Below, in pieces: positions 1 through 51,864 of a stretch of DNA of 64,000 bases. A program made the position numbers and the translations under genes. The stretch is taken from contig NC_059425.1 in the NCBI RefSeq assembly GCF_021028975.2, positions 19,778,001 to 19,842,000 on the forward strand. Reading direction: 5' to 3'. This DNA comes from Sphaerodactylus townsendi. Taxonomy: Eukaryota. How positions within the stretch are numbered: the stretch's first letter is position 1; each line of letters begins with the position of its first letter. Below the pieces are notes generated by a model that saw only the letters and a list, made by a program, of their open reading frames with translations, did no database searches and was not told the DNA's origin.

Positions 1-299
1 AACCGCTACGCCACACTCTTTATGATCTGCTCGAGGCTAAGAGTGGGCTGACCTCAATTTTGCTTGGCACACTGTATGAAGCAGCCTACAGTCCTACTGT
101 ATGCAAACCAAGGCTACCTCCTGGCGATCCCCCCAAAAAACCTATATATATCTCTCCTTAATTCATTTATAACTCCTTTTCTTCACTGAATCTTGCTGAA
201 ACAGCTGGTTTGGGTCATGCTATCCTGAGCAGGTTCTTGAGCCAGAAGTCATAGGAAGCTCCCTACTGGATCAGACCAAGAACCACAAACCCACCAGAA

Positions 300-1130
300 A
301 GGCGCCCTTGCCTCCCTCCTCCTCCTCGCTCGCTCGCGCTTGGGATCCCCTCGACCCCGCAGCGGTCTCTCACCTGTTGCCGGTCCCCACCTTCCAGAGC
401 GCGCTCTACGACCCGCTTCTGCGTCTCCCGCAGCAGATCCAGCTCCAACAGCCCGGCCAGGCTGGCCTGCAGGCGCTCCCCGATGCGGAGCCGCTCGTTG
501 CCGGACCACAGCGGGGGCGGCACGGCTCGGCGGACCATGACCACGGCGGGGCCCCCGGGCAGAGGGTCCGCGCCCCCCACCGCCCGCCTCTTGGCCAGAG
601 GAGGCTGCATGCGGGGCAGGTGGAGGCGGCGGGCAGAGCTACCGGCAGCGACCCTGGGGGGAGCCAAGGGGGGGGGGGCACCTGGACCGGTTCCGAGCAA
701 TAATCGCGCCCGCCTTGAGCCGGCCCCGGGGAAAAGCTCCGAGCCGCCACTCGGGCGACTTCGCGTCTTGCTGGGCTAAGAAGCAAAGAGCAGCTCAGAC
801 AAAGGGGACGGGTTTGAAAGAGTCACGTGGAGCCAGGTTCGCGCCCCCCCTCCCCAGTTTCCCGTGTTCTGATTGGCTCGAGCTGGATAAAACAAAACAT
901 TCTTAAAGAGCGGAAAAGTTTCCCTGCGGAAAGAGAGACGCCAGATGGCCTCGAGGTGCGGGGGGTCGTTTTCTTTCATCCCCCGTTCTGAACGGGACTT
1001 TACAGAAAAACCCTTAAGGGCGAAAGCAAGGAGTAGAGTTTGCTCCCCGTCGCGGGAGGAAGAGCCAGCCGGGGGTCGTTTGCTGAGGGAACCAGGAGGG
1101 GATGGGTCGGGTTGCCAACGGAGCAGGAGA
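300..1130. promoter_or_regulatory. CpG island / putative bidirectional promoter of the DACT and LC3C-like genes
   Basis: GC- and CpG-rich. E-box GTCACGTG at 822-829; inverted CCAAT (GATTGG) at about 871-876. Genes diverge on either side. Confidence 0.7.
374..610 (-). CDS. DACT4: First coding exon of a Dapper/DACT-family gene, probably DACT4; the gene continues off the left edge
   Basis: MQPPLAKRR...WSGNERLRIGERLQASLAGLLELDLLRETQKRVVERAL resembles the DACT N-terminal leucine-zipper block (DACT1 [29 protein letters not shown]). 79 codons end at a phase-0 donor CAG|GTGAGA at 374/373. Lies in a CpG island. Paralog assignment rests on synteny. Confidence 0.75.
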
Positions 1131-2401
1131 AAAATGCACTGTCCCTTTAAGAGAGGGTTTGCTGCGTGGAAATGGGCAGCTGAAGCTGGTCATGAAGGGG
1201 AGATCAATAATATCACCTGGTGAATCACGACCCTTTCAGCTGTTGTTAAAGGGAAAAGGCTTTTTATTTCTCCAGGCCAGTTGGCAACCCTGCCTTTTCG
1301 ATGGTCTGTGTCTCATTTATACCCGCTTTTCTCCCTAGTGAGGACCCAAGGCAGCTTTTAACCATTCTCCTCTCCATGTTATTCTCACAATAACCCTGTG
1401 AGGTAGGTTAGACAAAGTCAACCAGTGAGTTTTCATGCAGATTCAAACCTGGGATTTCTAGATTCCGGTAGAATATTCTAACCCTTACACCACACTGGCA
1501 CAACTATTAATTGAATACATTTCTGACCCTCCCAGTTCAGAGGTAGTACATGATTGGCCAGAGGAACTCCTTTCAACATAATGTTGCTAGACTTCAGGAG
1601 TATCTATCTGGTGTTCTAACAATCGGTGGGTCGGACACTTCCTTCAGGTACACTGCCTCAGACTATGGAAGCTCCTATGCTTTGTGGTTCAGAAGACAAT
1701 CTCCGTCCCCTGTAGCACCACCTCTTCCTTCTTCATATTAGCATGTATTGAACGCTTTTGATCATCACAAGCGTAATCCTTACAACACCCCAGTACGGTA
1801 GGTCAGCATTAGTACTCCCATATTATAGATGGAGCACCTGCGATTGATAGCCAATAGCTTGTACAGTCACCTAATTAATAAACAGTAGAGACAATTCAAA
1901 CCAGAGAACTTCCCGATTTGCAGATCTGTCTCCTAGTTAGTATACCGAACAGGAACTCAGAGATACACTAGCTCAGGGAGATTCTGTTTATCAAGAAGAT
2001 CAATGGACTTTGAGAGACCTTTCCTCTGTGCGTTTGTCTTCTCTTCCCAGACCATTTAACTCAACACCCATCATTACATATTGTGGCAATGAGTTCCAAC
2101 AGTTCATAGTGCAATGGTGAGGAAAGGCTTCCTTATACCAGGTGCTGATCTAGGGCCAATCAGTTGCATTGCAGACTATAAAAGCAACCTGATGGCCAAC
2201 CCTTCAGGCCCATTCTGCTTCCATCCACCTGAAACACATCTTCAGGGTTTAGATTTTGAAATTGCTGCCTCTCCTGTCCTCACCTGCAAATTTAAGCGGT
2301 AGTAAATTTGTTGGTAAAGGTGAATTTAGGGTTCTTCCTTTTCCTTCCAGCTCTCCCCCCTCCCAAAGGAGGTTTCTTTTGTCTCCCCTTTTCTAAGTAA
2401 G

Positions 2402-5400
2402 ATGGATCCGCTCCCTTCATTCAAACACAGAAAATCCTTTGGTAAGGTGTCCTAGCCAATGTAAATGTTCCTTATTTTGCAGTGTGACTTTTTTCCCCAG
2501 CTGGGAGCGCTCCCTGCTGGTTAGAGAGGTTGCAGTGAACTGTGGGGTGGGGGCTGTGATATATTTTCTGTGGCCTTTTTTGCTGGCTGAGAGAAAACTA
2601 ATTTGAAGGTGGGAGGGTGTTTTCCCTATTGTTGCTGAAGATTTATTTTTTCTGTTCTAGCTGCTAGGAAAAGTGAAGTAGCTTCTATTCGGATCAAGTT
2701 TACCAACAAGCTACCGGTATGTGGGGTTGGGTCTACTCTTATTTGTTGCAATGGGTAATGTCTACTTGGGGGAGGGTGATGAAAATCTGCTCTGTTAAGC
2801 CTGGTGGTAGGAGACTGCTATAAAAGATGATTAAATGGAATTTTTCACTCAAGTTGCATTGGACAGTTCATAGGAGACTGTTCCTAAGGTGCATTGAAAT
2901 CCCTAACCAGTTCACTAATTTTCTGTATTGGTGAATTGTTGTTATTAATACATCTAACTTTCAATGTGGATGAAGCAGTGGATGCTTAAATCCACAGAGT
3001 GGAGCCATGAACAAACAAGTCAGTTTTTCCCCCTAGAACAGTGAAGGCGAACCTTTTTGAGACCGAGTGCCCAAATTACAACCCAAAACCCACTTATTTA
3101 TTGCAAAGTGCCAACACGACAATCTAACCTGAATACTGAGGTTTTAGTTAAGAAAAAACAGTTGGCTCCGAGGTGTGCGTTACTTGGGAGTAAGCTTGGT
3201 GATAGTCGGCTTTGAAGCAACCGTGCAACTCTTCCCACGGGTGAATCACGACCCTAGGAGGGTTTGCTCAAAAGCAAGTCCCATTGCCAGCAACTGAGCT
3301 TACTCCCAGGTAAAGGATCGCACTTTAGTTCTTCGCATGAAAATCAGTGGGGTTTAACAGCACTTAACAGGGTTACCTACACTGCTTCCCCAAAACTAGG
3401 TCTTAGGTTTAATGCTAATAATCGAGGCCAGCCTAGATGTGGGCGGGGGGGCAACTCTGTTTGTGCGTGCCCACAGAGAGGGCTCTGAGTGCCACCTCTG
3501 GCACCCGTGCCATAGGTTCGCCACCACTGCCCTAGAATTACTCTGTACTCTGAAAACCTCAGGAAGGAATGGGCTCACAAAACCCCAATCTTCCAGGTTA
3601 GTCCCTGGGAGGTTAGAAACCCTGCAGACAGCCCAAGTGTCTGTTTGATGCTGCTATCCCTTTTCACTCCCTGGGGTGCCAAAAACAAACTGGGTACTCC
3701 TTGCTGCCACCACTGAGTCTGAAAATATCACCTGCTAAAAAGAGTTGTATGCCTTTCACTCCATATCTGCATTGCCAACTAGAGGCTCTGCCTGGTTGCT
3801 GCACCTGCCAGCTTTGCTCTTACAAGCTTTTGCAACTTTGAAATTTGAAGGGAGTGTGCTCCTGAGACGGCAACTTTACACATTGCGCCCCCCCCCCCCC
3901 CCCCATTACTGCACTTTTCACAGCAAGACCAAATAGGTGAGATGTAGTCCCAGGAATTAGGTTTCGAGCATTCAAAGCATAAGCAAGTTAATAAACAAAT
4001 TCGTGTTGTACACCGCCCAGAGCCCCTAGGGGATGGGGCGGTCTAAAAATCTGAAAAATAAATAAATAAGTAAATAACAGTAATATCTGTGGTTGGTCCA
4101 AGTATTTGGGAGTCAGAAGGAAAGGCAGGCAGAAAATCTACCCTTGTGACTTCATCCTACCTGGGGATTATTTTTTATCTTTTTGCTTCAGGAAGAAGGA
4201 AATGTATTGTAGCAATTATGCTGTTCCCCTCTCTATCCTTTTGGTTGTCATCTTCCAGTAGGGTGTGGGGCGGACACCCATTGTCCTGTTTTTGCCAGAT
4301 CCATTAGCATAACCAAGAGTTGGAGTGCTCTATGCTTCGGGCTGGATGGTTCCTTGCCCCCACCCCAGTGTGGTGTAGTGGTTAAAAATAGGTGGACTCT
4401 AGTCTGGAGAATTGCGTTTGATTCTCCACTCCTCCATATGAGGAGCGGACTCTAATCTAGTGAACCAGGATTGTTTCCTTGCTCCTACAAATGCTGCTGG
4501 CTGAGTGACCTTGGGCTAGTCCCAGTTCTCTCAGAACTCTCTTGGCCACACCTATCTCACAGGGTGTCTGTTGTGAGGAGAGGATGGGAAGAAGTTTTTA
4601 AGCCATTTTGAGATTCCTTACAACTGATAAAAGTCAGGTATAAACCCAAACTCCTTCTCTTCCTTTCTGCTGCATGTGCAATGCAGATGGGTTCCTGAGT
4701 GCACAAAGTGCAGTCACAATGACTGAAATATTGGGATGGATTCTTGGGTAGGGGTCATTTCTCTCCACTCCTTAAGGAAACACACTTCTGTTGACCTTCA
4801 GAGCACAGGGGGTGGCATGCTTTGTATCTTAAGTTTTCCAGATGCTTCCAGGAGACCTTTAATGGAATCTATTCCCTTCAGTCCTCATTTCTGCATTCCT
4901 TTTTGTTCACCATCAAATTGGGATTGATTTGGGATGTTTTATCTGATAAATGAGATATCTGTATGTGTGGATGGGTGCTGTAAAACCCATCCAGAATCTT
5001 GACAGTTGTACCTGGACACTCTGAAACCAATTGTTTGTGCCTGCTGCGGCTTCCTAAAACCCAGTTTTCAGCAACTGGTACAACCACTGGGCCAAGCAAA
5101 TATGGAAAGATACCCTGTTTCCCCTAATATAAGACATCCCCGAAAAATAAGACATAGTAGAGGTTTTGCTGAAATGCGAAATATAAGGCATCCCCCGAAA
5201 GTAAGACATAGCAAAGTTTTTGTTTGGAAGCATGCCCGACGAAAGGAACACAGGAAAAATAAGACATCCCCTGAAAATAAGACATAGCACATCTTTGGGA
5301 GCAAAAATTAATATAAGACACTATCTTATATTCATATTGGGAGGGAGTGGTATTGACTTTACCAACAATTGATCTATGAATCATGGTGGGGGCAAACAGA

Positions 5401-6846
5401 AGACTCTGTCCATTCCCTGTTTGTCTAGAGACAAGTGGTTCCTCCTGCTGGAGCCAAAACATGGAGTGAGCTGGACAGCTGGATTTATCAAACAAACTGA
5501 CTGCCTCCGTGATCCTTCCTACTTTATAGGTGATCCTAGAGCGCTATCCCAAGGAGAAAATATTGCCAGTCTTGAACAAGATCAAATTTCTTGTTCCAGA
5601 AGACTTCACTATGGGCCAGTTTGTTTCTATTATACGGTAAGATTGGTTTATCCATGGCATGAATCCCAGTTGGCAGGAGTGGTGCTTTTAGGTGATCCAA
5701 GTTATCACCAGTCTTATCTACTCACTTAGCTCACCTAAGTACAAGGTAAGCCACAAACTTAAGCCTCTTGTATTGGTGAGAAGTCCTCTTGATTCACTTT
5801 TCAATTGCTGTGGGCTTTGGTGAATCCATGGCAGCTACCTCAAGATCTCTACTTCCTGGTGGCGTACATTATTGTGATTTGAGTCGGACACGGGAAGCTG
5901 GCCCATGCACAAAATACGTCACAGATGACTTATGGCAACTCCACAGGGTTTTCAAGGCAACAGATGTCCAGAAATGGTTTGCCATTGCCCGCCTCTGAGT
6001 TGCAACCTTGATATTCCTTCGTGGTCTCCCATCCAAATATTGACCATGGCCAATCCAGCTTAGCTTTCTAGATCTGATGCGGTTGGGGTAGCCTGAGCTA
6101 TCCAGGTCAGGGCATCTCAGGTCCAACTCAAATCTCTCCTCTGTTCTTCTCCTGTCGGGGTGGTCTTGGCCAAACTCCTCTTTCCCTAAACTGCAGTTTA
6201 TTCATCCTATCAATGAACAAAATGGCAGCCTGCTCGGTGAGATGGTATGAAGCATAACTTATATAGTGCTTATATTTATGTCCATTATCACCAAGTGTTT
6301 CTGCACTTTGCTTTTGGAAGACTGCATTCACTTGAGCATGTTCTTGGTGCTGCTATTTTATCCTGAAGAAATAAGGTGTCCAGATGGCTCCAACAGGTTA
6401 TACAACCAAGGGTTAAGTATCTGGAAGGCTGCAAGTATTTCCACGTGGTATGTAGGGCCTGGTTTAAGCTGCAGATATATTAATGGGATTTAAAAGACTC
6501 TGGTTTGGTGGAGAGGAAGAATCTTGTCATGCGTAGAATGGGGTAAGAGAACTGGTATGATTACAAGCCTTCTTAAAAATACTTTGTTGCCTGCTTTTCT
6601 CACTGAGACCCCAGGAATATTACAGAATAAAAACAACATACTCTCATTGCATAAAACATGATATTTCTTGCTCTTTTCCCCAGAAACAGAATGTCCATCA
6701 GCTCTACCCAAGCCTTCTACTTCCTGGCTGATAATAACCGCAGTATGGTTAACATGTCATCCCCCATGTCTGAAGTGTATTCAACTTACAAAGATGAAGA
6801 TGGCTTCCTGTACATGACCTACGCTTCACAGGAAATGTTTGGCTGA
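2402..6846 (+). CDS. MAP1LC3CL: MAP1LC3C-like ATG8 protein, 4 coding exons, 121 aa
   Basis: Exons 2402-2441, 2661-2716, 5530-5636 and 6684-6846 (40+56+107+163=366 nt), all GT-AG and phase-consistent. Protein MDPLPSFKHRKSFAARKSEVASIRIKFTNKLPVILERYPKEKILPVLNKIKFLVPEDFTMGQFVSIIRNRMSISSTQAFYFLADNNRSMVNMSSPMSEVYSTYKDEDGFLYMTYASQEMFG*, closest in pattern to LC3C. The 56- and 107-nt internal exons are typical of LC3 genes. The symbol is tentative. Confidence 0.92.
3039..3529. mobile_element. Non-autonomous hAT element
   Basis: TIRs CAGTGaaGGCGAACCT / AGGTTCGCCAcCACTG; perfect 8-bp TSD CCCTAGAA; same family as 32905-33385. Confidence 0.85.
4366..4660 (+). mobile_element. Squam3-like (MIR/Ther1-derived) tRNA SINE
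   Basis: tRNA-like head GTGGTGTAGTGGTTAA, CORE-like GTGACCTTGGGCTAGTC, 3' tail TATAAACCCAAACTCCTTCT; many copies in the window. Confidence 0.75.
5111..5332. mobile_element. Tc1/mariner-pogo (Tigger-like) MITE, truncated
   Basis: TA-CCCTGTTTCCCC end and internal AAAATAAGACA repeats; near-identical to 27370-27601. Confidence 0.7.
5905..6115 (-). mobile_element. 5S-Sauria-like SINE
   Basis: Reverse complement has the 5S-like segment AAAGCTAAGCTGG...TTGGATGGGAGACCAC followed by an RTE/Sauria-type GGCAATGGCAAACCA tail. Confidence 0.6.
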
Positions 6847-9180
6847 CAGCCCAAGATGTGCCAAGGATATGATTTGGTTAAAATTGGTTTGTGTCTCTCT
6901 GACCACACCACTCACCTTCTGTTATAAACCGGATTGCATTCTTCTCAAAATGGCTATGTGGATCTACTGCTCTTCTGCTGCGTTGCATGTAAACCCCTGG
7001 AGATCTTTCTGAAGGAGACCTGTCTCAACAATAGACAAGTAGATGTGTTGGGTGATGGGTTTAGGGAGGGGGATGCCACATTCTGGAAGGATCACAGAGG
7101 TTCCATTCAAAACTCTTTCTAGGCTCTCTGAAGTCTTCCTGGGCTGATCTGCATTCTGATACATCAAAGGATTACTTGGACACGGTTGATAAGGGGCTGT
7201 AGTTATGACCCTCTCAAGCATCATGGGTTGAGCTGGCTTTAGACGATGGCTTTTCATTGACTCAACCAAGAACGGATTCTAGGGAAGGCTTGTTTTGGGT
7301 GTTGGTTCTCACTAATTTAATAACCCTTCTAACAGTATGCTAAAATATTGATGCACTTTTAAAGAGCCTGCCTCCTCCCTTGGGTAGGTGGTGGCTTCTT
7401 GCAAGCTGCCGCGATTCTCATCGGTGGGTACTTTCTTTTAAAAGATGCAAATCCTACATGAAAGTGTGGAGGAGGGGATGCTTCACTGCAGACTGAGAAC
7501 CAGAGTTTAGAGAGCATTCTCACGCTGAAGAGGGAACGAATGGATTGGTTTAATTCGCAACAGTACTGTACATGTATGTTTTCTATAGTGCTGGAAAGAC
7601 TTGTTTTTGTCAGCCACTTTTTAAGGGAGAAACAATTGTTAACATGGGCAATTTCGAGTAGAAAATGCACATTTTTAAAGCTAGTCTTTGCACTGTGAAA
7701 TCTCTTTTCCTAATCTCACTTTTATGGATATGGTTCTCTTTTTGAAACATGTCTTAAACAGTATTGCTGACTGCTATGTATGTTTTTTAGGGTCTAAGCT
7801 TGCGGGAGCATAGTGGGCCTGAAAGCCAGTGCCTTGTCAAGACCTTAAAACAAGCTTTACAGAACATCAGTTGCTGGTTTACAGCAGAGCTCTTTGGGAG
7901 ATTTTTGACTCCTACACGGGCCTATATAGTAAACTTTGCAGTTCTACAGTTCTGGTCCAAAGTCTTTTGGCTAATCCCAACACTATTTACTGGGCTTTTA
8001 AGATTTGCATTGCTTTTTTTGTGGGGTTGGTTTTAATGTACTTGGAATTATCTAGCTTACTACAGCACACTTGGACTAGTGGAGATCAGAAGTTGATAAG
8101 GCGAAGTACCTGAGTCACGTGCTGCATGGCCAGAAACGGGAAGTTTAAACAGCTGCTCTTCCTTCTGGACCAACCTGTAATTGAAACCTAGGTTGAGCAG
8201 TCTGCCACAAATAGAGATGTCTCTCCTGCTAGTGGGGTTAGTCTGGAAGGAAAGCCCTTCTGGCTCACACGGGACGAGAACTGCCCCCATTTTGATGACC
8301 TAATACAGTGAATGAAGGAGCATTCTTGCAGTCAAATGTGGTGATGGGAGTTCCCTGTTCACAAGTGTTTTTCTTTGCAATTAATCATTTGGCAATTTGG
8401 ATTAAGACCATGGTATCTGGAAGGTGGCATTAACCATTTCACCTAGTCTGTTTTTGGGCCTTGCTATGTGCTCTGAGGTAATGGTAAGGCATGCTGTATG
8501 TTGCCTTATTTGCTTCAGCTGAGCAAATAGTGGCTCTGTGGGGCTGATTTAGTTGAGGGGGAAAGCAAGATAGTGTGGGAGGGGTGTAAGAGTTTAAAGA
8601 TGCTTTCAACGAAGCAGGAAGAGTTTAGAGGGTTTAAACCAAAACTCTCTATATCTTGCTTTGGCCCCTCAGCACAACAAGCATCTTTTAAGCGAAACAT
8701 CTTTTAAGGGAAGATGATTGCGGAGTTGTTCACTCTTGAGAGAAAGTTAAAAGTTTCAGTTGCAGTTTACATCTTAGGAATGCTGGAGAGACAGTTTGGC
8801 TGCATTTGGGCTTCATCAGGCTGAAATGCATTATGGGTACTAAGCAACTTATTCTTGTCAGATAAAGAGCTGCTTGTGCAAACTTATTGGCTCACATTTT
8901 CTTTTCTTTGGAGTGGGAAGAGGGAAGTGATAAGCAGGGAGGAGGCTTATTCCAAGTAAGAGGAGAAAGCAGTCTTGAGGGCCATGAAGGGCAAAGGGTG
9001 TACAATAAGGGACAATCCACAGGGATATTTTTCTGGAACAGCCCTAAAAAAAAGGCTAGCTTCACCAATGTCTTTTTTGATTCTTGTTTCTCTGAGGCTG
9101 ATGCAGGTGTATGTCCCTCTCAATAGTGCCCATTGTGTAGTTGGCAGTATCTTAACTGACTTGGACCATCCTCCTCACTC

Positions 9181-9829
9181 CCCCATCTTAAGTCAAATTA
9201 ATGCCAGACAACCACTGCAAGGGGGTGAATTTGATAAAATACTTTCAGACTGTTTGGCTTCTAAAAACTTCTGAAAACTGTAACACTGGGTTAGTCATCC
9301 CGTGGTTCACGAAAAGCCTCATGTGCAATCCCACCAATCCAAAAGAGCCATGTGGCTATTGAGAGCCAAAGTGGTGTAGTGCAGGTGGATTCTAATCTGG
9401 AGAACCGGTTTTGATTCCCCACTCCTCCACCTGAGTGGCAGAGGCTTATCTGGTGAACCAGATGTGTTTCTACACGCCTACATTCCTGCTGGGTGACCTT
9501 GGGCTAGTCACAGTTCTCTCAGAACTCTCTCAGCCCCTTACCTCACAAGGTGTCTGTTGTGGGGAGAGGAAGGGAAAGGAGCTGTAGGTCACCTTACAGG
9601 AGAGAAAGGTGGAGTATAAATCCAAAATCCTTCTTCCTTCTCCCTGCCCCCACCCCCCCATCTTGAAATCAAATTAATGCCAGACAGCCACTACATGGTG
9701 GTGAATGTGATGAAATGCTTTCAGACTGTTTGGCTTCTTAAAAACATCAGAAAGCTGTAACACTGGGGTAGTCATCCCGTGGTTCACGGAAAGACTCGTC
9801 TACAGTCCCCATCAATCAAAAGAGCCATG
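9181..9829 (+). repeat. About 175-bp direct repeats (9181-9352 and 9656-9829) flanking a Squam3-like SINE (9363-9640)
   Basis: CCCCATCTT...GTCATCCCGTGGTTCACG...AAAAGAGCCATGT occurs twice. Confidence 0.85.
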
Positions 9830-10408
9830 TTACCATTACATCCCCTGTGCATCACTCCCCACTCAAACACACACAATATTGGAATATGACATATGTATAA
9901 TGTAACCTTCTTATGAACCAGAGTACCTTTGAGTGTGTAGGATTTCTCTCCTCATCCCTGTTGAACATGAGCCAGCCTTTGTGTTTCTGGTGTGCAGGAA
10001 ACAGCTCACGAGTCAGTCTTGTGACACAAAACAATATACAACCTTCCAGGTCTTCACAATTCTATATCATGCTGGATACTAAAATAATAACATGCTTCCC
10101 CATATTAAACATTCCCTTCAGTTGAACTCTGGTAAGGCAAAAGACAGGGTGGTTAAATCCTCTTCATGCTAAGTTTTCCACTTCACATGAAGTTTTATGT
10201 GCTAGCATTTGACAGCAGTATTCCACCGTGAAGCTGCTGATATTGATCCAGCCTCTGCTGTAGAACCCTACTTCTCCACAACCTTGATAGAATCACGGAC
10301 AAGTGCTTTAGAAATAAAACTCAGTTTATCTTGCACCCCTATTAATGACGAAGCAGTCCCAATTTCTCCTACCTTTCTCTTCATCATCAAGATAGGACTT
10401 GATGATAG

Positions 10409-10693
10409 GAGCAGCAGTGGCGTAGTGGCGAAGAGCAGTGGCGAAGAGCAGGTGCACTCTGATCTGGAGGAATCGGGTTTGATTCCTCGCTCTGCCGCCT
10501 GAGCTGTGGAGGCTTATCTGGGGAATTCAGATTAGCCTGTACACTCCCACACACGCCAGCTGGGTGACCTTGGGCTCTCTTAGCCCCATCCACCTCACAG
10601 GGTGTTTGTTGTGAGGGGGGAAGGGCAAGGAGATTGTAAGCCCCTTTGAGTCTCCTACAGGAGAGAAAGGGGGGATATAAATCCAAACTCTAC
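10409..10693 (+). mobile_element. Squam3-like SINE
   Basis: Same head, CORE and tail as the other copies. Confidence 0.75.
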
Positions 10694-11627
10694 TCTACTA
10701 GATGGTTTGAGAAGCCACTAAATTTAAAGCCTCTCAACCCAGGGACTGTAGCTCAGTCAGTTCTCTGGAACCCCCTTGAGAAATTGGTCTGTGCGCTGAG
10801 GAGAGAGCAAAGGTGCCGAGATGGGAATGACGGGTACTCAGTTTTCTTGTTGCAGAACCAGGACTGCTGACTGGTTCAGAGCAGGGGGAAAGATGTGGGT
10901 CTTTCCCTTGCCGTCTCTGTGGCGTGAGCCCCACAGCTCCTATGGGAGAGCTGAGAGTACTCTCTCATGCCAGGGAGAGCAAGAAGGCAGCAAGAGAAGG
11001 ATATGTAAAAGTCCCAAGTCTGCTCTGGGCCACCTAAGCAATACTGTGAACCTCCTTTGGCAACAGAACAAGTTCTAATGTGGGAGGTCTGTGTGCCCTC
11101 TGCATAGGGTACAGCTCAGGTGAGACGGTAGGGAGTCAGGAAAAGAGCAGTCTGGCTATGAAAAAAGGGGTGAAACACGTATACACACAATATGGCCGGG
11201 TCGCTGGTTTCCTGGTGACGTCTACAGTGGTTTTATTTTTCTCTATGCTCCACTTGTCCTTCTCCTTGCACGTGCTCAGGTGGTAATGCAAAAGCTGCAG
11301 AGAAGGATGGTCCCTTTAGTTCCATCCCTGCCACAAGGCCTACATTTCAGGCCTACACCTGCCAGCCACAAGCCCTAAAGGGCTGTAGCCCACCCCACTA
11401 TCCTGACACATGGGACAGGTGCTATATTGGGGACCTAGAAGAGCCCCATGTAGTTTTCCAGCTGTAAGGGAAGTGGAGTTTGCAATCTTGTTTTGAATTA
11501 AGGTATCCCTGTTTGCCTATTTCCCTTTCACTCATGCGGCAGAAAGGCTGGGACTGAAGAGAACTACATAGGCATGCTCAGTGTGCAAGTACACCTCTAA
11601 GATGTCTTAAATTGCAAGGCTTTGGAC

Positions 11628-12018
11628 CAGTGGTGGGATCCAAAAATTTTAGTAACAGGTTTCCATGGTGGTGGGATTCAAACTGTAGCGTAGCACCAAT
11701 GGGGCTGGGCGGGGCACGACAGGGGTGTGGCCGGGCATTCCTGGGAGGGGCATTCCTGGGCGGGGCTGTGGCAAGGACTCCGCTGCTGCACCAGTCCTTG
11801 GGCAGGAAATGAATGCACGCAGGCGCAGGCTGCCATACACGCCGGTGCACCTCCTTCTAGACTGCTTCAAGTTCTGCGCGCTACTGCTGAGAGGAGGGGC
11901 GTAACTAAGGCAAAAATCACGTGGCAAAATCACCAATTAGTAACCCCCTCTCGGCACACACAAATAATTAGTAACCTACTCTTGGGAACCTGTGAGAACC
12001 TGCTGGATCCCACCTCTG
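11628..12018. mobile_element. Non-autonomous hAT element, about 390-bp family
   Basis: CAGTGGTGGGATCCA...TGGATCCCACCTCTG; 8-bp TSD CTTTGGAC; further copies at 21309-21700 and 29005-29396. Confidence 0.88.
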
Positions 12019-15520: not shown

Positions 15521-16900
15521 CTACAAGGGATTCTCCACATCCTGTTTGCAACGTTTAGCTGCCAGGTCTGCGTTGTGCGCCTTGCGGATGTGCCGGTAGA
15601 GGTCTCCGGACTGGGTGTAGCTCCGCATGCAATAGCGGCATTCATAGGGGCGCTCCCGGGTGTGGACTGTGGCATGGCGCCGGAGCGTGTAGGAGCACGA
15701 GAAGGTCTTTCCACATGTCTTACAAGTGGGCATGTCCTCTGTGAAGATGCCAAAGTTAGGGTGAACCTCGTAGTCCTGCAGATACATCTGTTCATGCAAT
15801 GATGGAATTGTCATGTTAGAGAAGCTTTGTCCACTGGGCACAGGGATCATGTGATAGGGAACAGGCTCCTGAGTCAGGAAGTTGCCTTCTGAAGATACCT
15901 CCTCCAGCCCACCAGGCTCCGGAAAGCTATCCAAGTGGCGGCTGCAGCCTCCAGCTGACCCTCCTTCCGCACTTTCCAGCCCCATCTCCAGGTTCTGGCC
16001 CTCTAGCTGCTCAGCCGTATCTGGTTCCTCATCAGAGATCACAATGGCTTCCATTTTGACTTTGACGGAGGACCTGTTTGGTTCCTTTTGGCAGAATACA
16101 CGGATGCTGCCTTCCCGCTGTTCCGCATACTTCTCCGGAGCAGTGTCTATACTAGAAGGCCCCTCAGCAATGTTCCCCAGAGGAAAGCAGCTGTGTGAGA
16201 TAGTTTCAGTGGAACTGCTGGGGCTGGAGAGGGAGATGTCAACGATAGCTGGCTGGAGGGGTCTGGTTGGGGGAAGAGCCTGCGGGGAATCGCCTTCCAT
16301 GCCAGGCTGGGTGGTGTCCGCAGCATCCAGCGTGGAGGCCAGCGGTTTCTCAGAACCAGCTTTCTCGACTCCTTTCCATTCCTCTGCATTTTTCTTCTCT
16401 GCTTCACAAGGCTGCAGGGGTGCAGAGGGCAACAGCTGTGCCCTGGGGGCCTGCAGTTGGCACTTAGAAGTGCTGGGTAGAAGTTCTGAACTGGCCGGGG
16501 ACTCTTCTTCCTTTTTGGTGCTGTCTGCTTCAGCCATACCCCGGGCCTGCAGTTTCTTTTTACACACCTTCACAATGTCATTCATGTGCAGGTAACTGGC
16601 AGCAGCGAGAACGTCCTCCACCGGAGTATCGTTGAAGGAGAGACCACCTTGGTACATGAATTCCAGGAGCAGTTCAAACGCTGGGGGGGTGACAATCTCA
16701 TTGTTGATGCACACGAAGTCCCCCTTATCCAGCCCTTCCTTGTAGAACATGTGGAAAAAGGCACTGCACGAGGCCAGCACGGCTCGATGGGCCAGGAACT
16801 GGGTGCTGCCCACCAGCACTGTGCAATCGCAAAGGAAACCCTCGTGTTGCTGATTCCGCAGACTCTGCAACAGGTTCTTGCTGTGGTCGGGGAAATCCAT
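15521..16900 (-). CDS. ZBTB3: Zinc finger and BTB domain-containing protein 3, 459 aa, single coding exon
   Basis: BTB domain [46 protein letters not shown] and two C2H2 fingers ([43 protein letters not shown]) match ZBTB3. Acceptor AG at 16947-16946 lies upstream of the ATG. Confidence 0.95.
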
Positions 16901-44000: not shown

Positions 44001-47000
44001 TAACGCTATCCAGGTTAGTGGCCATCACCACCTCCTGTGGCAGCATATTTCAAACAGCATATTCCAATTTCCCCAAAAAAGTTTTGTATATGCTAAAATT
44101 AAGGGGTTTTTTTTGTTTTCTTCATAACTGTGTGGAGTCCTCATTAGTTGTAATCCATTTGTAGTACAGTGCATTACACACAGGTTGTTTTTCTGCCAGC
44201 TAACTTATGTTTTATTGTTGAAGCCCAGAGAAGCATTTGTTACGTTACATTAAATTTGTTATTTAGGTCTTTCTGGAGGCGTGGGTGGTGGGTGGGTGGG
44301 GCCTGGGGATAACTCCTTCTCTGGGCACCCCCCTCCCAGGGGCTTGGTGTCCCTGAGCTATGCCCCCGAGCCCAGGGGGGCACAGCCCCGTGTTCTGCCG
44401 GCTGTCTCCTGCCATTCCCAGGCCCTGGAGATGGCTTGCAGGGAGGTGGCGGGGTGGGGGCTCAGAGGTGTGTGGCCGGGGCACACGCCTTTCATCACGT
44501 GGGGGTGTGTGCTTGGCACCCCCCATGTGACCAAAAGGCATGCGCCCAGGACATGGGTGACCTCATGTCCTTAGGGCGGTATGCCACTGGGTCTTTCTGA
44601 CTACAATTTAATTGCGACAGAGGTCAACACGGTTGTATTTGAATTGTTCCATCCCTGTTGCCATTACTTTATCACCTTAGCCCCGAAGAGGTAGCTGGAG
44701 ATTTTCTGCTATTAAAACTGATATCCAGGTACCAGACATCAGTTAACCTGGAGCGCAGTTAACCAATGGCTGCGTTGGAAGGCAGACTTTATGGCATTAC
44801 ACCCCATTGAAGGTGCTCCCCAAATCCCGCCTTTCCTAGCCTTTGCCCCCCAAATCTCCAGGTATTTTCCAACCCAGAGCTGGCAGCCCTAACTGGAGAG
44901 ATGGAGAGGTCGTCCTCCATGGGGCCATGACTTACTTGATTTTGTTCCAGAATCTAATTATGTGTATCATTGTGAAAAACACAGAGCCTTGTGATTAAGG
45001 TGACCTGGTGAACGAGGGATGAAGAACACGGGGGCACAGATCGTTTGCCAGAGTAAATTGAATGTATTCCCTGCATCCTCCACAGGTGCAGACGTACAAT
45101 ATGTCAACATGAAGAATTTGACCGGGGGGATCGTGCACACCAAGTTCTGGGTAGTAGATCAGAAGCATGTCTACATAGGCAGCGCCAACATGGACTGGCG
45201 CTCACTCACTCAGGTATCTTCTGGGTGTGGGGTGAGTTTGCTCCAGAGAAGCACATTGCCAGAGGAGAGGATGGTTGGAGAGAAAGAGGCCATCTTTGTT
45301 CTTTACGTGACAGGTCAAGGAACTGGGTGCTGTCCTGTACAACTGCAGCTGTCTGGCTCAGGATCTGGGTCGTATCTTTACTATGTACCACATGCTGGGA
45401 GGAGAAGAGGCTTCCATCCCTGCAGCATGGCCAGCCAGCCTTGCGGCAAAGTCCAGCCTAAACAGCCCCTTGAAGCTTCAACTCAACGGCTCCAGTGCCG
45501 AACTCTACATTTCTGTAAGCCTGGCTATTGTTCCGTTCTCTTTGTTCCCTTGAGCATCTGGAAGTTCTGGGATAGGTCAGTTTCCTTGCAAGTAAAAAGC
45601 ATCGGAAACCCTTTTGTACTGTCAGGTTCTGCACTGGTAGACGAGTTGAGCAGGTGGAGGCACAGGCAAAGTCCCAGGCAGGCGGTACTCTTGAAAGTAG
45701 TCAGTAGTGCCCCAAAATCAAGGGGTGTATCTACTAGCCAGCGTGGCATAGTGGTTAAGAGCAGGTGCACTCTAATCTGGAGGAACCGGGTTTGATTCCC
45801 TGCTCTGCCACTTGAGCTGTGGGGGCTTATCTGGGGAACCAGATTAGCTTGTGCACTCAAACACATGCCAGCTGGGTGACCTTGAGCTAGTCACAGTTCT
45901 TCGGAGCTCTCTTAGCCCCATCCACCTCACAAGGTGTTTGTTGGGGGGCAGGGGAGGGAAAGGAGATTGTAAGCCCCTTTGAGCCTCCTTACAGGAGAGA
46001 AAGGGGGGATATAAATCCAGACTCTTCTTCTTCTTCTAAAGTTGGCACCCAGGTCAAGCACTGTGGGCTTTAAACTGTGGGCTCTGCCTCCTAAACTCCA
46101 CCTCCAAAGTCATGTGGACTTCGGAGGCAGAGCCAGCAGTATAAAGCTGGACCCAGCCAGGCTGAGCCTGTAGTTCAAGGCTGGCCTCTGCCTGACCAGG
46201 TGCAGCTTTAAATTGTGAGCTTCAAGGCAGAGCCTGCAATTTAAAGCTAGACTCAGTTGAACCCAGCCTTGAACTCCACTCCTCCCCACCCCAATTCCAC
46301 CTGGAATTCAGGGGCAGGGCATGCAGTTTAAGACAAAGAGCAGTTCAACAGTGTATTGCGGGGGGCAGGGGGTAGTAGCACCAAAAAACCCACAGCCAGA
46401 GGGAGGGGGGGTAGTAGCACCAAAAAACAAACCCCATTTGGTCTCTCTTGGTAGATCATGGGAGGAACCATAGGCCAGTGACAGCGCAGGTGTTTCATGT
46501 GTGTAATCCCTGCTGATATTAGAATATAAGAAGAGCCCTGCTGGATTAGACCTGTGATCCATCTAGTCCAGTACAAGAAAGGGCTGTGGACGGTGGCAGA
46601 GCACTTGCTTGGCATGCAGAAGGACCCAGGTTCAGTTCCCACCATCTCCATTATCAGGTTGGAGGTGACGCAAGAGACTCCTTCCTGAGAGTTGCTACCA
46701 GTCAGAGTAGGCGGACCTTTATGGCCCAGTGGTCAAATTCAGTGCAAGGCACCTCCATCCCATTTGGTTTCACGCAATGGCCAGCAAACAAGGCACAAAG
46801 GCCAAGATCTCCCCCTGATATTGCCCCCTGGCACTGGTATTCAGAGGGCTACTGCCTCAAGGCATGGAGGTTCCCTTTAGTTCTTGTGGTCAGTGGCCAT
46901 TCATGAATTACTTCTCCACAAATCTGTCCAATCCGCCTTTAAATCTAAGTGGCCATCTGTCAGGATGTGTATGCCCCTTCCATAACATGTGGCAGTCAAT

Positions 47001-50000
47001 TCCCCAGTTATCTACTAAGTGAAGAATTTTCTGTTCTGTACTTTCCTTATAGGCTTTCCAGGGGCACCTGGCTGACTGCGTTGTGAAACAGGATATTGGA
47101 CTAGATGGACCATTGGTCCAACCCAGCATGGCTGCTCTTATCATCAATCCCCTGCATTTTCAGAGTATTTAGAGCAGGCCGTGCCAGGAAAAGGCTTCCC
47201 TGTCCCTCAGTTCATGGAGAACCACTGTTAAACTATTCAGGGCACCTCTGACAAGGGGACTGGGACATCTCTCCTTCTCCCAGCCCCCAACACTGTGGTT
47301 TTCTGTTGTTTCTGCAGAGTTCCCCGCCAGCCCTGTGTTCAGAAGGCCGCACCTCCGATCTCATGGCTATTGTGCGCACGATTGAGGATGCCCGGGCTTT
47401 CGTCTACATTGCTGTGATGGACTATGAGCCACAGTGCTCATTCTGCAAACCCAAGAGGTGTGAGCAGGGGGTATGGTAGCTGGGATTGAGGGCTAAAATA
47501 ACTCCTGGACCCTTTTTGCTTCTTCTGTGATGAAGGGAAAGGGCGCTTTCTCCCATGCCAAATAATCTGCTTTCAATGCACTTTGCAGCTGGAGTTTACT
47601 GTGTGAAATGGCACTTTCGCACATGCAGAACAATGCACTTTCAATTCACTTTCGATGCACTTTGCAGCTGGATTTTACTGTGTGAAATCGCAAAATCCAC
47701 TTGCAAACAATTGTGAAAGTGGATTGAAAGTGCAGTATTCTGCGTGTGTGAAAGTGCCCAAAGCTACTTGCAAGCAATTGTTAAAGTGGACTGGAAGTGC
47801 ATTATTCAATATGTGGAAAAGTGTCCAAAGAATGTGGTTTCCACAGTTGTGGATAAGGGAATTGGTGTGGGAGGGCAGATTGGAAGAAACAGCCACAATA
47901 AAGAACATCAGTGAACCACAGTGCTAGGACTAATCTTCAGCTGCTACTCATGCTTTAGTTTGCCACCTAATAAATCAGCAGAGTTGAGTTACAATTGTGT
48001 GAACAGAAAGCCAGATCTAGCAGTAGCGTCATATTTGCAGTCAGTCAGTTTCTGTTTTCAGGCTCAGCAGCTGGGATTGACTCCAGTGCGGTTGTGTGTG
48101 GTTCCCCCCCACAGGTACTGGCCCGTTATCGACGACGCCTTGCGTGCCGCCGCCTGTGACAGAAGAGTAAATGTGCGCCTTCTCATCAGTTGCTGGCCAC
48201 ACTCGCATCGTGACATGTTTGTCTTCCTGGAGTCGCTCATCATCCTCAGCCAGAAGCCACTGAGTTGCCCCATCGAGGTGGTGAGTCCTAGGATCAAAAG
48301 GGGAAAGCTAGGGACCCTTCCCATGGACCCTTTTTCTTGATCCAGATATGTGCAGCTTGACTTTTGGAGGTCTCGGTTTGGAGGTCCTGGTTTGACTGGT
48401 CACCCAGTCAAACCAGGCATGGGAGGGCTGTCTCCATTCACTCGCTTGTCTGCTTCCTCAGCCTTTTATTGCACGCCAAATGCAGTAGACATCGGAAGTT
48501 AAGCAGGATGAATCCTGTCTAGTACTTGGATGGGACCCCCCGCCCCCCCAAGGAATACCAGGCTGCTACGCAGAGGCAGGCAATGGCAAACCACTTATGT
48601 TAGTCTCTTGCCTTGAAAACCCTACAGGGCCACCATAAGTTGGCTGCAACTTGACTGCGCTTTATGCAGACAGATGTGTTAGGTGGAGTGTTGTGGGGTT
48701 CCTGGGCTGTACGGCCGTGTTCCAGTAGCATTTTCTCCTGACGTTTTGCCTGCATCTGTGGCTGGCATCTTCAGAAACGTCAGGAGAAAACGCTACTGGA
48801 ACACGCCCATACAGCCCGGAAAACCCACAACACTCCAGTGATTCCGGCCGTGAAAGCCTTCGACAATACAATGTGTTAGGTGTTGGCGAGCCCCTGCCTC
48901 TCAGCAGGAGCCCCTTTGCATGTTGGATAGAACCACTGCCTCTTACAGACGAATTGTAAGAATTCCTGGGATAATGCCTTGTCTTTGATCACTGTGAAGC
49001 TCTAAATCAGAGGTGGCCAAATTGTGGCCCGTGAGCCATATGTGACTCGCTGGGGAGGCTCAAGATGGTGCAGATCTCCCCCTCTGCGCATCCTTGCCTC
49101 TGGACGCAATGCCACGCTTTGCTATGGGAGCAGGAAGCCTGGAAGGGGCTGTGACAGCCTGACCATGGGAATAGGCAGCAGGAGTGCCCAGGGGCCCCCT
49201 AGCAAACTGTGGCAGCATGGCAAGAGACTAGTACGTGCATAGGGAGACATTCAGGTAGGCTGTGTTTAGCCAATATTCTGAGGCAGGGCAAGGAGAGAAC
49301 GGAGTATGGGCATTAGCTGTGCTCAGCTCTCCTGACTGTCCCACTGCCTCCCAAGCCCACTCAACATTCTCATCTGCCCACAAAAATTGACAGATGAGAA
49401 AGGAAGGTTCTTCTTACTTACTGAAATCCATAATAAATAGAGAAATGCCTTGTTGTTGTGGGTTTTCCAGGCTGTGTGGCCATGGTCTTGTTCCTAACGA
49501 TTTGCCTGCATCTATGGCTGGCATGTTCAGAGGTGTATCACAGAGAGAAGTCTGTTACTGTGTATAACACACTTCGAAAAGCTGTGACTTAGAGCTCTGA
49601 AAAGCTGTGACTAGCCCAAGGTCACCCAGCTGGCGTGTGTGGGAGTGCACAGGCTAATCTGAATTCCCCAGATAAGCCTCCACACCTCAAGCAGCAGAGC
49701 GGGGAATCAAACCCGGTTTCCCCAGATTAGAATGCACCTGCATTCTTCTTAACCACTTCGCCACTGCTGCTCCTGCAGGTTAGGAAGAAGATCTACCAGA
49801 CCACGGCCACACAGCCCGGAAAACCCACAACAACCAGTTGAATCTGGCGTGAAAGCCTTCAACAATACAGAGAAATAGCTTCTTGGCTTGAACGTTTTGT
49901 TTTTATGCTTCATATTTTAAACTGCCTTAGCCCAGTTGTCCATCTTGGCCTAGTACTGTCTCCTCTGACAGGCAGCCATTCTTCCGAGCCTCAGGCAGAG

Positions 50001-51864
50001 AAAGGTCTCTGCCGATACCGTCTACCTGAGATCCTTTAACTGGAAATGGTGGGAATAGAACCTGGGACCTTCCACATGCTGTGAACATTCCATGCCATTG
50101 AGCCTCAGCCCCTCCCCCCCTTGAAAGTGACCCCCCACTAGGCTGTAATGTCTGTTTTCCTTTCAGAATCTTTTTGTTGTTCCTGGAGAGGGAGAACAAC
50201 CTCCGATTCCATACACACACGTCAATCACAACAAGTACATGGTGACTGACCGCCTGGCCTACATTGGTACATACCTCTCTGATTAGGGTTTGCCAGCTCT
50301 GGGCTGGGAATACCTGGAGATTTTGAGGGTGGAGCCTGTGGAGGGTGAGGTTTGGGAAGGGGAGGGACTTCAATGGGGTATAATGGCATAGAGGCTATTT
50401 CCCAAAGGAGCCATTTACTCCAGTTGACCTGATTGCCCTGGGTCAGGAATGATAGCCCCCTGAGTGGAATGACTACTCCTGGGAGAAAACAGAAGTGTTC
50501 TGGGACTGGAATGACAGCCCCTGTGATTGAAATCAGGGTTCTGCCCTGATAATCGCAAGCCTTCGAGTGGAATGAAATACCTTACACCAATTTCAATTGA
50601 AGGAGCCATCATTCCACCCTTGTGTCTGTCATTCCAGGCCCAAAACACTTCTCTTACTCCCAGGGGTTCTCATTCCGCTCTGGGATTTGGCATGTTCTGT
50701 CCATGCTGGTAAAGGTCAAGAAGTCAGGTATCTCTGTCTATACCTTTGATAGCAGAAAGCTGACAGCTGAGAAGGCTTGGTACTACTTGGTGAAGCTTCA
50801 GGTTTTGTACACAAACCAGGGGCCCAGTTATCCTCTCTCGTCCAGGGCCTACAGAAACCTGGAAGAGGCTCTGCAAGGCAACATTACAGAATCCTTCTTG
50901 ACAGATTTATTTTCACAAAAGCCCTTTGAGCTGAGAGACTGGGTAAAACATTTTTAAAACAGTTTCAAAATAGTTCTCTTTTTGCCATCTCACTGCCAAC
51001 TGCTAGTGGTCCGTGTTCGCTGTGGTAGGCTCATTTACTCTTTTGAGTGCCTTTTACAAATAATTTCTTGTTCACAAATATACAGGGGGAGGCAGTGGAA
51101 TTAAGCAGGCCAGCAAGCAGTTATTCGTGCAACATCAACCCAGCCTGTCAGTACCTCCCAATGCCACTTTCTGGATGACTTCCTGTGCTCTTGATCCTAC
51201 AGGAAGCTCTTAATTCTGTGCGGGTTATGTTTGATAGTAAATGAGTAGTAAGCTGCAGTATTGCAGCAAAATCTCTGTTCCTAACCTGAGTTGGATCTCA
51301 ACAGGGGTGGGTATCAGGCAGGCGACTCAAGGCTGACTCCGCCTTCCATCCTTCTGAGGTCGGTAAAACCCGTTTGCCGGAGGTAGTGTAGACAGCTGGA
51401 AAAGGCAGCGGTGAACTACCTATAAATAAAGTTTGCCTACCAGGGGTCTGCAACCTGCAGCTCTCCAGATGTTCATGGTCTACAAATCCCATCGGCCATG
51501 CTGGCAGGGGCTGATGGGAATTGTAGTCCATGAACATCTGGAGAGCTGCAGGTTGCAGACCCTGGGCCCTAGTAAATGTTGCAATGTGACATCACCCCAC
51601 AGGTCAGCGATGAACCAGTGCTTGCCTTTGCCTTTAATGCGTGCATATCTTTTTGACCCTCCAGGTACCTCCAACTGGTCTGAAGATTATTTTACCCAGA
51701 CTGCAGGGGTGGGGTTGATCGTCAACCAGAGCGACCATGACAGTATTACGGCAGGCCAGGAATTCACCCTGCGCCGCCAGCTGGAGCAAGTGTTCCTCCG
51801 GGACTGGGATTCCTCCCACGTTGTGCCACTCGACAGTCATAGAAGTTGCACTAGGAGAAATTAG
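32038..51864 (+). CDS. PLD7: PLD3/PLD4-like type II membrane phospholipase D-family 5' exonuclease, probably PLD7, about 707 aa
   Basis: Confident exons: 39960-40144 (TM: [24 protein letters not shown]), 41688-41871 (LVLVESIP...[12 protein letters not shown]), 43209-43323, 45086-45213 (HTKFWVVD...[10 protein letters not shown]), 45314-45514, 47318-47457 (SSPP), 48115-48280 ([10 protein letters not shown]), 50167-50266 (HNKYMVTD), 51665-51864 ([10 protein letters not shown]). Tentative N-terminal exons: 32038-32241, 34372-34449, 36019-36130, 38441-38751. All are GT-AG and the phases close to 2124 nt. The family call is firm; the paralog name comes from synteny. Confidence 0.88.
32905..33385. 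mobile_element. Non-autonomous hAT element
   Basis: Inverted relative of 3039-3529; TSD GTTTAGAT. Confidence 0.85.
35355..36130 (+). pseudogene. Decayed PLD coding exon split by a hAT-like insertion (35605-35996)
   Basis: One frame runs from the acceptor at 35354/35355 to the donor at 36130/36131 once the insertion and one TSD (GCCTATGA/GCCTCTGA) are removed: 376 nt, phase 0 to 1. In-frame TGA at 35403 and 35556. Confidence 0.6.
36158..36376. mobile_element. Representative of an abundant MITE-like family with (A)GGGTTGCCA termini
   Basis: GTTGCCAGCTCC...TGGCAACCC. Related copies near 19700-19905, 19990-20190, 33890-34125, 36830-37035, 42010-42490, 44690-44890, 50284-50430 and 54473-54990. 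Confidence 0.65.
36551..36825 (-). mobile_element. Squam3-like SINE
   Basis: Reverse-complement family copy. Confidence 0.72.
37668..37835. mobile_element. hAT/Charlie-like MITE (CAGTGGTTCTCAACC family)
   Basis: TIRs present. Copies at 41411-41596, 53846-54031 (TSD GTTTACAG), 57986-58118 and 63499-63610; the last two are cut by an LTR. Confidence 0.8.
41082..41381 (+). mobile_element. Squam3-like SINE
   Basis: Full-length family copy with a (TTC)n tail. Confidence 0.78.
42119..42264. mobile_element. Fully palindromic hAT MITE, about 146 bp
   Basis: Near-perfect hairpin, TSD CCATAGAG. Copy at 54545-54690 (TSD GGCTAGGG); relative at 51441-51564. Confidence 0.85.
42317..42457. mobile_element. 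Harbinger-like MITE
   Basis: GGCTCATTCCGCAC...GTGCGGAAGGGGCC inverted ends; related nested copies at 47540-47826. Confidence 0.6.
43758..44065 (-). mobile_element. CR1 LINE 3' end
   Basis: TAAGAACATAAGA tail and CTGCTGGATCAGACC...CCATCTAGTCCAGC; older related pieces at 46520-47145. Confidence 0.75.
45737..46036 (+). mobile_element. Squam3-like SINE
   Basis: Full-length family copy. Confidence 0.78.
48490..48664 (+). mobile_element. 5S-Sauria-like SINE
   Basis: 5S-like GGAAGTTAAGCAGG...TAGTACTTGGATGGGA followed by the GGCAATGGCAAACCAC tail. Confidence 0.6.
51300..51636 (+). mobile_element. Sauria SINE fragment interrupted by a palindromic MITE
   Basis: GGCTGACTCCGCCTTCCATCCTTCTGAGGTCGGTAAAA core; (GCCTTT)n tail. 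Confidence 0.65.

Follow-up and report, generated by a model that had tools for sequence, protein, structure and literature searches.

We analyzed a window of 64,000 nucleotides from the gecko Sphaerodactylus townsendi (contig NC_059425.1, positions 19,778,001 to 19,842,000; all coordinates given below without an accession are positions in this window). The window contains a MAP1LC3C-like gene of the ATG8 family, hereafter LC3C-like, whose reading frame ends directly behind the conserved C-terminal glycine. The gene has four coding exons, all bordered by GT-AG and all on the same strand (+) (Table 1). Exon peptides were compared singly, and searches were made with single exons or with database proteins. 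Each exon peptide was 100% identical to the 121-residue S. townsendi RefSeq protein "MAP1LC3C-like" (P0162), and the exon lengths, together with the two codons split at exon borders, sum to 121 residues. The record that encodes this protein (GCA_021028975.2, CM037614.2) is identical to the window across the whole gene, and the gene start matches that of a called gene in the public locus; the exon model is the existing public annotation.

Table 1. Features of the LC3C-like gene and of its neighbors in the 64,000-nucleotide window.
Feature	Position	Strand	Description
Coding exon 1	2402..2441	+	ATG and 13 codons (MDPLPSFKHRKSF) plus 1 base; donor GT 2442-2443; 13/13 residues identical to RefSeq protein
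Coding exon 2	2661..2716	+	56 nucleotides, ..ARKSEVASIRIKFTNKLP; acceptor AG 2659-2660, donor GT 2717-2718; 18/18 identical to RefSeq protein
Coding exon 3	5530..5636	+	107 nucleotides, VILERYPKEK...FVSII plus 2 bases; acceptor AG 5528-5529, donor GT 5637-5638; 35/35 identical to RefSeq protein; Pfam ATG8 match
Coding exon 4	6684..6846	+	1 base and 53 codons ending ...YASQEMFG, then stop; 53/53 identical to RefSeq protein; seen in contigs of four runs
Gly121 codon and stop	6841..6846	+	GGC (conjugation glycine) 6841-6843, TGA 6844-6846 immediately after
Dapper/Dact-family gene, 5' part (Dact4-type by synteny)	1..610	-	PF15268 in called gene; end at position 610; CpG-rich stretch
BTB zinc-finger gene (Zbtb3-like by synteny), downstream	15521..16846	-	PF00651; range is only the part inside the fetched locus
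PLD-family exons	45004-50283	+	two H.K....D motifs

Exon 4 opens at 6684 in phase 1, behind a splice acceptor CCAG at 6680-6683, and translates as (R)NRMSISSTQAFYFLADNNRSMVNMSSPMSEVYSTYKDEDGFLYMTYASQEMFG, a 53-residue peptide with zero residues beyond the glycine. Both of the longer exon peptides matched the Pfam ATG8 profile (PF02991) above the gathering score: exon 3 over profile positions 20-53 (E = 8.4e-9) and exon 4 over positions 55-104 of 104 (E = 1.2e-13). Because the profile was matched through its last position, the terminal glycine of exon 4 is the conserved conjugation glycine. Thus, the end of the coding sequence is as a preliminary description of this stretch had read it, a conserved glycine followed at once by TGA.

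Among solved structures, human LC3C was closest to exon 4 (E = 7e-17), with LC3B and LC3A next (about 4e-15). When exon 4 was compared with 1.84 billion representatives, LC3-type proteins were recovered; the top three were 70-79% identical, were all Gly-terminal, and had a one-residue insertion in common. A word search with the protein of the amphisbaenian Rhineura recovered 121-residue "LC3C-like" proteins from the gekkotans Sphaerodactylus, Euleptes, Gekko, and Heteronotia. Proteins of the same length were found in Lerista (skink), Podarcis (lacertid), Rhineura itself, Hemicordylus (cordylid), Pogona (agamid), and Varanus, as well as in the snakes Pituophis and Erythrolamprus; further snake models and one Tiliqua model had different lengths. 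The turtle LC3C-like proteins (Carettochelys, Lepidochelys, Pangshura, and Emydura) had 128 residues, and the word search gave one LC3C-like protein each in Alligator, lungfish, and bichir. A canonical MAP1LC3C of 137-148 residues was also present in other squamates, turtles, lungfish, and bichir.

To place these sequences, we used a maximum-likelihood tree of about 127 alignment columns, with tails removed and LC3A/B-type proteins as the outgroup. The LC3C-like proteins of squamates, turtles, alligator, lungfish, and bichir formed a clade (support, 99/98) nested in the vertebrate LC3C clade (100/98). Canonical tetrapod LC3C formed a clade of its own (98/90), with the gecko protein outside. 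Gekko, Podarcis, Carettochelys, Protopterus, and Erpetoichthys each had one gene in the LC3C-like clade and one in the canonical clade. The gecko gene is therefore not the orthologue of human LC3C but an old LC3C-like paralogue. Its earlier assignment as LC3C-like holds as to type, given the best structure match and the place within the vertebrate LC3C clade, but the gene is a separate paralogue and not LC3C itself.

None of the LC3C-like proteins of squamates (12/12) and turtles (4/4) on the tree had a residue beyond the glycine, and models outside the tree (six more squamate and one more turtle) were also Gly-terminal. One state change on the tree explains 16/16 reptile sequences, among four changes in all over 54 scored tips. 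The codon following the glycine was TGA in the gecko, Pogona, Pituophis, and Carettochelys and TAA in Emydura, in a second turtle genome (GCA_020497125.1), and in one turtle RNA contig. Since the same codon position holds TGA in some species and TAA in others, the stop has been kept at exactly that codon despite an exchange of stop codons. The preliminary description had implied a novelty of a single genome; the Gly-stop end is instead common to squamates and turtles, being found in every orthologue seen from both groups. The LC3C-like proteins of lungfish and bichir each have one residue beyond the glycine (Thr and Ala, respectively).

The preliminary description had also proposed that the TGA arose in one step from the Cys codon (TGY) of LC3C. 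That LC3C has Cys at this place is correct for the canonical protein of mammals, birds, and turtles, but the canonical protein of squamates has Gly, Cys, or Tyr, and over all lineages the residue is Cys, Gly, Tyr, Ser, or Leu. With Thr and Ala in the nearest outgroups within the clade and a variable residue in canonical LC3C, the codon that preceded the stop cannot be named, and an origin from Cys cannot be shown. Separately, the canonical LC3C model of the greater horseshoe bat (Rhinolophus ferrumequinum, GCA_004115265.3; 126 amino acids, single assembly) also ends GGC TGA. Past this TGA, what is left of the mammalian tail can still be recognized in the bat frame (...PCHPL), and this looks like a recent change from a Cys codon to a stop.

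Many invertebrate LC3C-like proteins among the matches were Gly-terminal as well, including those of starfish, hemichordates, and sponges. In Lepidoptera, the matches included tandem two-domain LC3C-related proteins of 211-247 amino acids, in which the ...FG of the first ATG8 unit leads into the second unit. These match the silkworm BmLC3 type described in PMC13658554.

The LC3C-like gene is under purifying selection. Exon-by-exon sums for the gecko against turtle, Pogona, and snake gave proportions of nonsynonymous (pN) and synonymous (pS) differences of 0.12-0.14 and 0.69-0.80, respectively, and a ratio of nonsynonymous to synonymous substitution (dN/dS) of about 0.06-0.07, with dS saturated in the snake comparison. 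In an alignment of 16 sequences, F120-G121 was invariant, as were R10, L53, P55, R68, and R70, while K51, F52, and V54 were nearly invariant. The KFLVP stretch, IIRNR, and YASQEMFG were each invariant or nearly so. From established knowledge of LC3 structures, we take the conserved positions to represent the N-terminal helical extension and the residues (basic FKxRK stretch, KFLVP, and IIRxR) that dock LC3-interacting region (LIR) motifs.

Transcription was seen in a turtle. A Logan contig of 1346 bases (run SRR27880514) matches a turtle genomic locus from which introns 2 and 3 have been spliced out, with intron 1 still present. Exons 2-4 of this contig form a single frame that ends in Gly-TAA, and an AATAAA lies about 530 bases downstream. 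The removal of introns 2 and 3 indicates both transcription and splicing of the orthologue in turtle. A further candidate for RNA evidence, P0005, was rejected, being a genome gene model.

Taken together, we consider it likely that the gecko MAP1LC3C-like gene, which exon 4 completes, is functional, that it is an ancient LC3C duplicate that has ended in Gly-stop since the ancestor of turtles and squamates, and that the free Gly121 of its product can be conjugated without a cut by ATG4. The structure of the gene, its identity, clade, and synteny, the conservation of the stop, and the purifying selection are established directly. As for the sequence of events, the frame would have come to a stop right behind the conjugation glycine in the common ancestor of turtles and squamates, and this state would have been kept since. 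The primary translation product would then already be the "form I" species, with C-terminal Gly121 free. ATG7, ATG3, and ATG12-ATG5-ATG16L1 would attach the LC3C-like protein to lipid with no prior cut by ATG4, which would be needed only for removal from membranes. For a primary product that ends at the conjugation glycine, we infer this competence for conjugation and this independence from ATG4 priming from the established Atg8 pathway and from the precedent of engineered human Atg8-G forms, which are reported to be lipidated in cells that lack all ATG4s (bioRxiv 10.1101/2020.12.17.422596). On these grounds the protein probably skips the usual protease trimming.

Several observations weigh against this interpretation. 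LGG-2 of Caenorhabditis elegans, which is Gly-terminal, is reported to be mostly unlipidated in embryo extracts (PMC7615515), so an exposed glycine is no guarantee of efficient conjugation. Compared with canonical LC3C, the LC3C-like clade has longer branches, indicating faster evolution, and the proteins carry the one-residue insertion; some change of function is possible. This insertion was found in turtles and squamates and not in lungfish or bichir, which on present sampling is the same distribution as that of the tail loss. The alligator LC3C-like model has a 15-residue tail, which lies behind an N run (Alligator sinensis KE696650.1, about 6795-6856) and is unreadable; because the model crosses this run in its last exon, its tail and its long branch on the tree are unreliable. 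For S. townsendi, 0 RNA runs were on record, all gecko runs being DNA-like. Finally, no AATAAA or ATTAAA occurs in 6847-9500, that is, within 2.6 kb 3' of the gecko stop.

The LGG-2 result also bears on a different account of the gene, in which the free glycine is real but the protein either works mainly in its unlipidated form, as a scaffold or adaptor, or is attached to other proteins and not to lipid, so that "pre-primed for lipidation" would miss its main role. Roles of unlipidated Atg8 proteins have been described (PMC7615515), as has protein ATG8ylation antagonized by ATG4 (PMC8532562), and a fast-evolving clade with a one-residue insertion would be in keeping with such a role. However, the invariant YASQEMFG and the strictly kept stop argue for selection on the free Gly carboxylate and thus for conjugation of some kind. 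We regard this account as rather unlikely.

We think it very unlikely that the gene is decaying or nonfunctional, with the stop behind the glycine an inconsequential truncating mutation. Such a reading could draw on the loss of the gene set in mammals and birds, as described for the Dact4 region (PMC4236578 and PMC5901865), on the longer branches, and on the lack of RNA evidence in S. townsendi. Against it, the frame is intact and the splice sites are canonical in every species examined, the length of 121 amino acids is constant across gekkotans, skinks, lacertids, the amphisbaenian, the agamid, the varanid, and snakes, the position of the stop survives the exchange of TGA and TAA, and in turtle the orthologue yields a spliced transcript. 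A pseudogene as such was rejected on the dN/dS of about 0.06 together with the intact splice sites.

The TGA might also be read as selenocysteine, or be read through, to give a tailed precursor that still depends on ATG4. The exchange of selenocysteine for Cys is a known pattern, and in mammals, birds, and turtles the residue of canonical LC3C at this place is Cys; furthermore, a stop followed by C is a weak termination context, and the gecko stop has a C next. Yet a scan of positions 1-12000 gave no selenocysteine insertion sequence (SECIS) element and no other convincing Rfam match at E≤1, and the three turtle sequences with TAA could not encode selenocysteine. The base after the stop varies among species (C, G, G, and T), and the frame downstream is not conserved among gecko, snake, agamid, and turtle, closing at varying distances. 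With no SECIS in the Rfam scan, an unconserved downstream frame, and TAA in turtles, we rejected selenocysteine and read-through as a candidate and give them only a minute probability.

Support for the stop from sequencing runs came from Logan assembled contigs over 5400-7000 in four DNA-like runs; such contigs show the presence of a sequence and not the absence of variants. In the two S. townsendi samples, contigs spanned 6017-7000 with one difference (the sole difference listed for run X1 in this span, at position 6648) and 6024-7000 with none. A second, related organism gave a contig over 6730-6964 with no differences, and a third, also related, gave one over 6724-6890 that differed at one position, 6763. 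Four exon 4 differences were listed for this third organism, three of them synonymous third-position changes and one a Pro>Thr replacement. No difference was found at the stop codon (6844-6846) in the contigs of the two same-organism samples and the two related organisms, which bears out the stop as first read. The assembly may itself derive from one of the two same-organism samples; thus, the independent support is that of the other sample and the two relatives. That the Gly-stop reflects a mistake in assembly or sequencing, or is peculiar to one individual, can be dismissed as next to impossible: although the feature is a single codon and one sample may be the assembly source, the contigs of the second sample and the two related organisms agree at 6841-6846, at least six other species with independent assemblies have a stop at this codon, and the contigs of the four runs and the assemblies of other species together exclude such an artifact.

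In run X4, a second contig of 702 bases was found over 6730-6850 besides the identical one, with 8 differences over 121 bases. It may come from a diverged allele or from a second copy of the sequence, or else from a different organism within the run.

Comparison with human MAP1LC3C showed both likeness and difference. The two share the ATG8 fold, the ...YASQE.FG end, the vertebrate LC3C clade, and, as inferred, the layout of four coding exons, and human LC3C is the closest solved relative. However, the human protein has a long tail past Gly126 that is removed by ATG4, whereas the gecko protein is tailless. In addition, the gecko gene belongs to the separate LC3C-like clade (99/98) and to another locus, adjoining Dact4 and a Zbtb3-like gene, and its protein has the one-residue insertion (VDGN/ADNN versus VN-N) and a shorter N terminus. 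Canonical reptile MAP1LC3C (Gekko japonicus, Podarcis muralis, and Trachemys) is of the same family, is about 58-63% identical to the gecko protein, and occurs in reptiles that also carry the LC3C-like gene. It has 143-148 amino acids, a tail of 17-18 residues, and slow evolution, whereas the LC3C-like proteins have 121 amino acids (128 in turtles), are tailless, and evolve faster.

Gly-terminal ATG8 proteins are otherwise known from more distant organisms. LGG-2 structures were matched by exon 4 at E = 1e-9, but LGG-2 is a nematode protein with an independent loss of the tail. Arabidopsis ATG8h and ATG8i (clade II) naturally have nothing beyond the C-terminal glycine and yet still associate with ATG4 (PMC7615515); these are plant proteins of another subfamily and of independent origin. 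The engineered Atg8-G forms reach the same end state but are laboratory constructs, whereas the reptile state is natural and older than the turtle-squamate split.

Atg8 proteins are made as pro-forms that require a cut by ATG4, according to accounts of vertebrate autophagy and at least one review (PMC7615515). Set against this, the reptile LC3C-like protein is a real, conserved, and probably functional vertebrate example of a Gly-terminal ATG8. It is a vertebrate ATG8 that is not made as a pro-form, in a state conserved across a large clade and not as the accident of one genome, and it provides in nature what the engineered Atg8-G constructs provide in the laboratory for separating the two jobs of ATG4. 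If efficient attachment to lipid or to proteins without ATG4 holds true, the protein would offer a natural tool to split ATG4 priming from removal in a vertebrate. In practical terms its weight is modest: RefSeq already lists the gene for many reptiles, and plants, nematodes, and many invertebrate LC3C-like proteins are established examples of the principle. In a partial search of the literature, we found no published mention of a Gly-terminal vertebrate ATG8 or of the missing tail of reptile LC3C-like, and we know of no function specific to this paralogue.

The gene also adds a concrete case to the early-vertebrate duplicates that reptiles retained and that mammals and birds lost. Among the best 120 matches, no LC3C-like gene came from mammals or birds, which is suggestive only. 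Absence in mammals, birds, and amphibians is drawn from the match lists and the Dact4 paper (PMC4236578) rather than from an exhaustive search, and the duplicate appears to have been lost in mammals and birds. We lean, with some reserve, toward the broader view that turtles and squamates have kept, since before their divergence, a dedicated and conjugation-ready LC3C duplicate whose attachment ATG4 priming cannot gate, and that its loss leaves mammals and birds with tailed ATG8s only.

Conservation extends to the block of neighboring genes (Dact4-type, LC3C-like, BTB zinc-finger, and PLD). The order of a Dapper-domain gene (-), the ATG8 gene, a BTB zinc-finger gene (-), and a PLD-domain gene was identical in gecko and turtle. 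The alligator has a zinc-finger gene and a PLD gene downstream of its ATG8 gene, whose upstream neighbor has no Pfam match on record. Snake and Pogona agreed over the fetched part of the locus, with the Dapper neighbor in Pogona and the BTB zinc-finger neighbor in the snake. Here, the names Dact4 and Zbtb3 follow from synteny and Pfam domains and not from trees of those genes. Schubert et al. (2014; PMC4236578) described Dact4 as restricted to reptiles, Latimeria, and ray-finned fishes and as linked with "Map1lc3c" and, in sarcopterygians, also with Zbtb3 and Polr2g. With its Dapper gene upstream (-) and its BTB zinc-finger gene downstream, the gecko locus agrees with this description of a Dact4-linked "Map1lc3c".

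Over positions 1-1000, the GC content was 0.56-0.66 and the observed/expected CpG ratio was 0.68-0.83. This stretch overlaps the 5' end of the Dapper gene (-) and lies ∼1.4-2.4 kb upstream of the LC3C-like ATG; it may be a shared divergent promoter region of the two genes. Intron 3 contains, at 5886-6155, a very high-copy repeat, over which the summed contig depth of each of the four runs rose from ∼85 to >200,000 and joints and loose ends were numerous. A weak match to Rfam 5S rRNA, below threshold (22.6 bits; E = 0.64), was found at 5997-6117 (-), and the repeat may be a 5S-derived short interspersed nuclear element (SINE).

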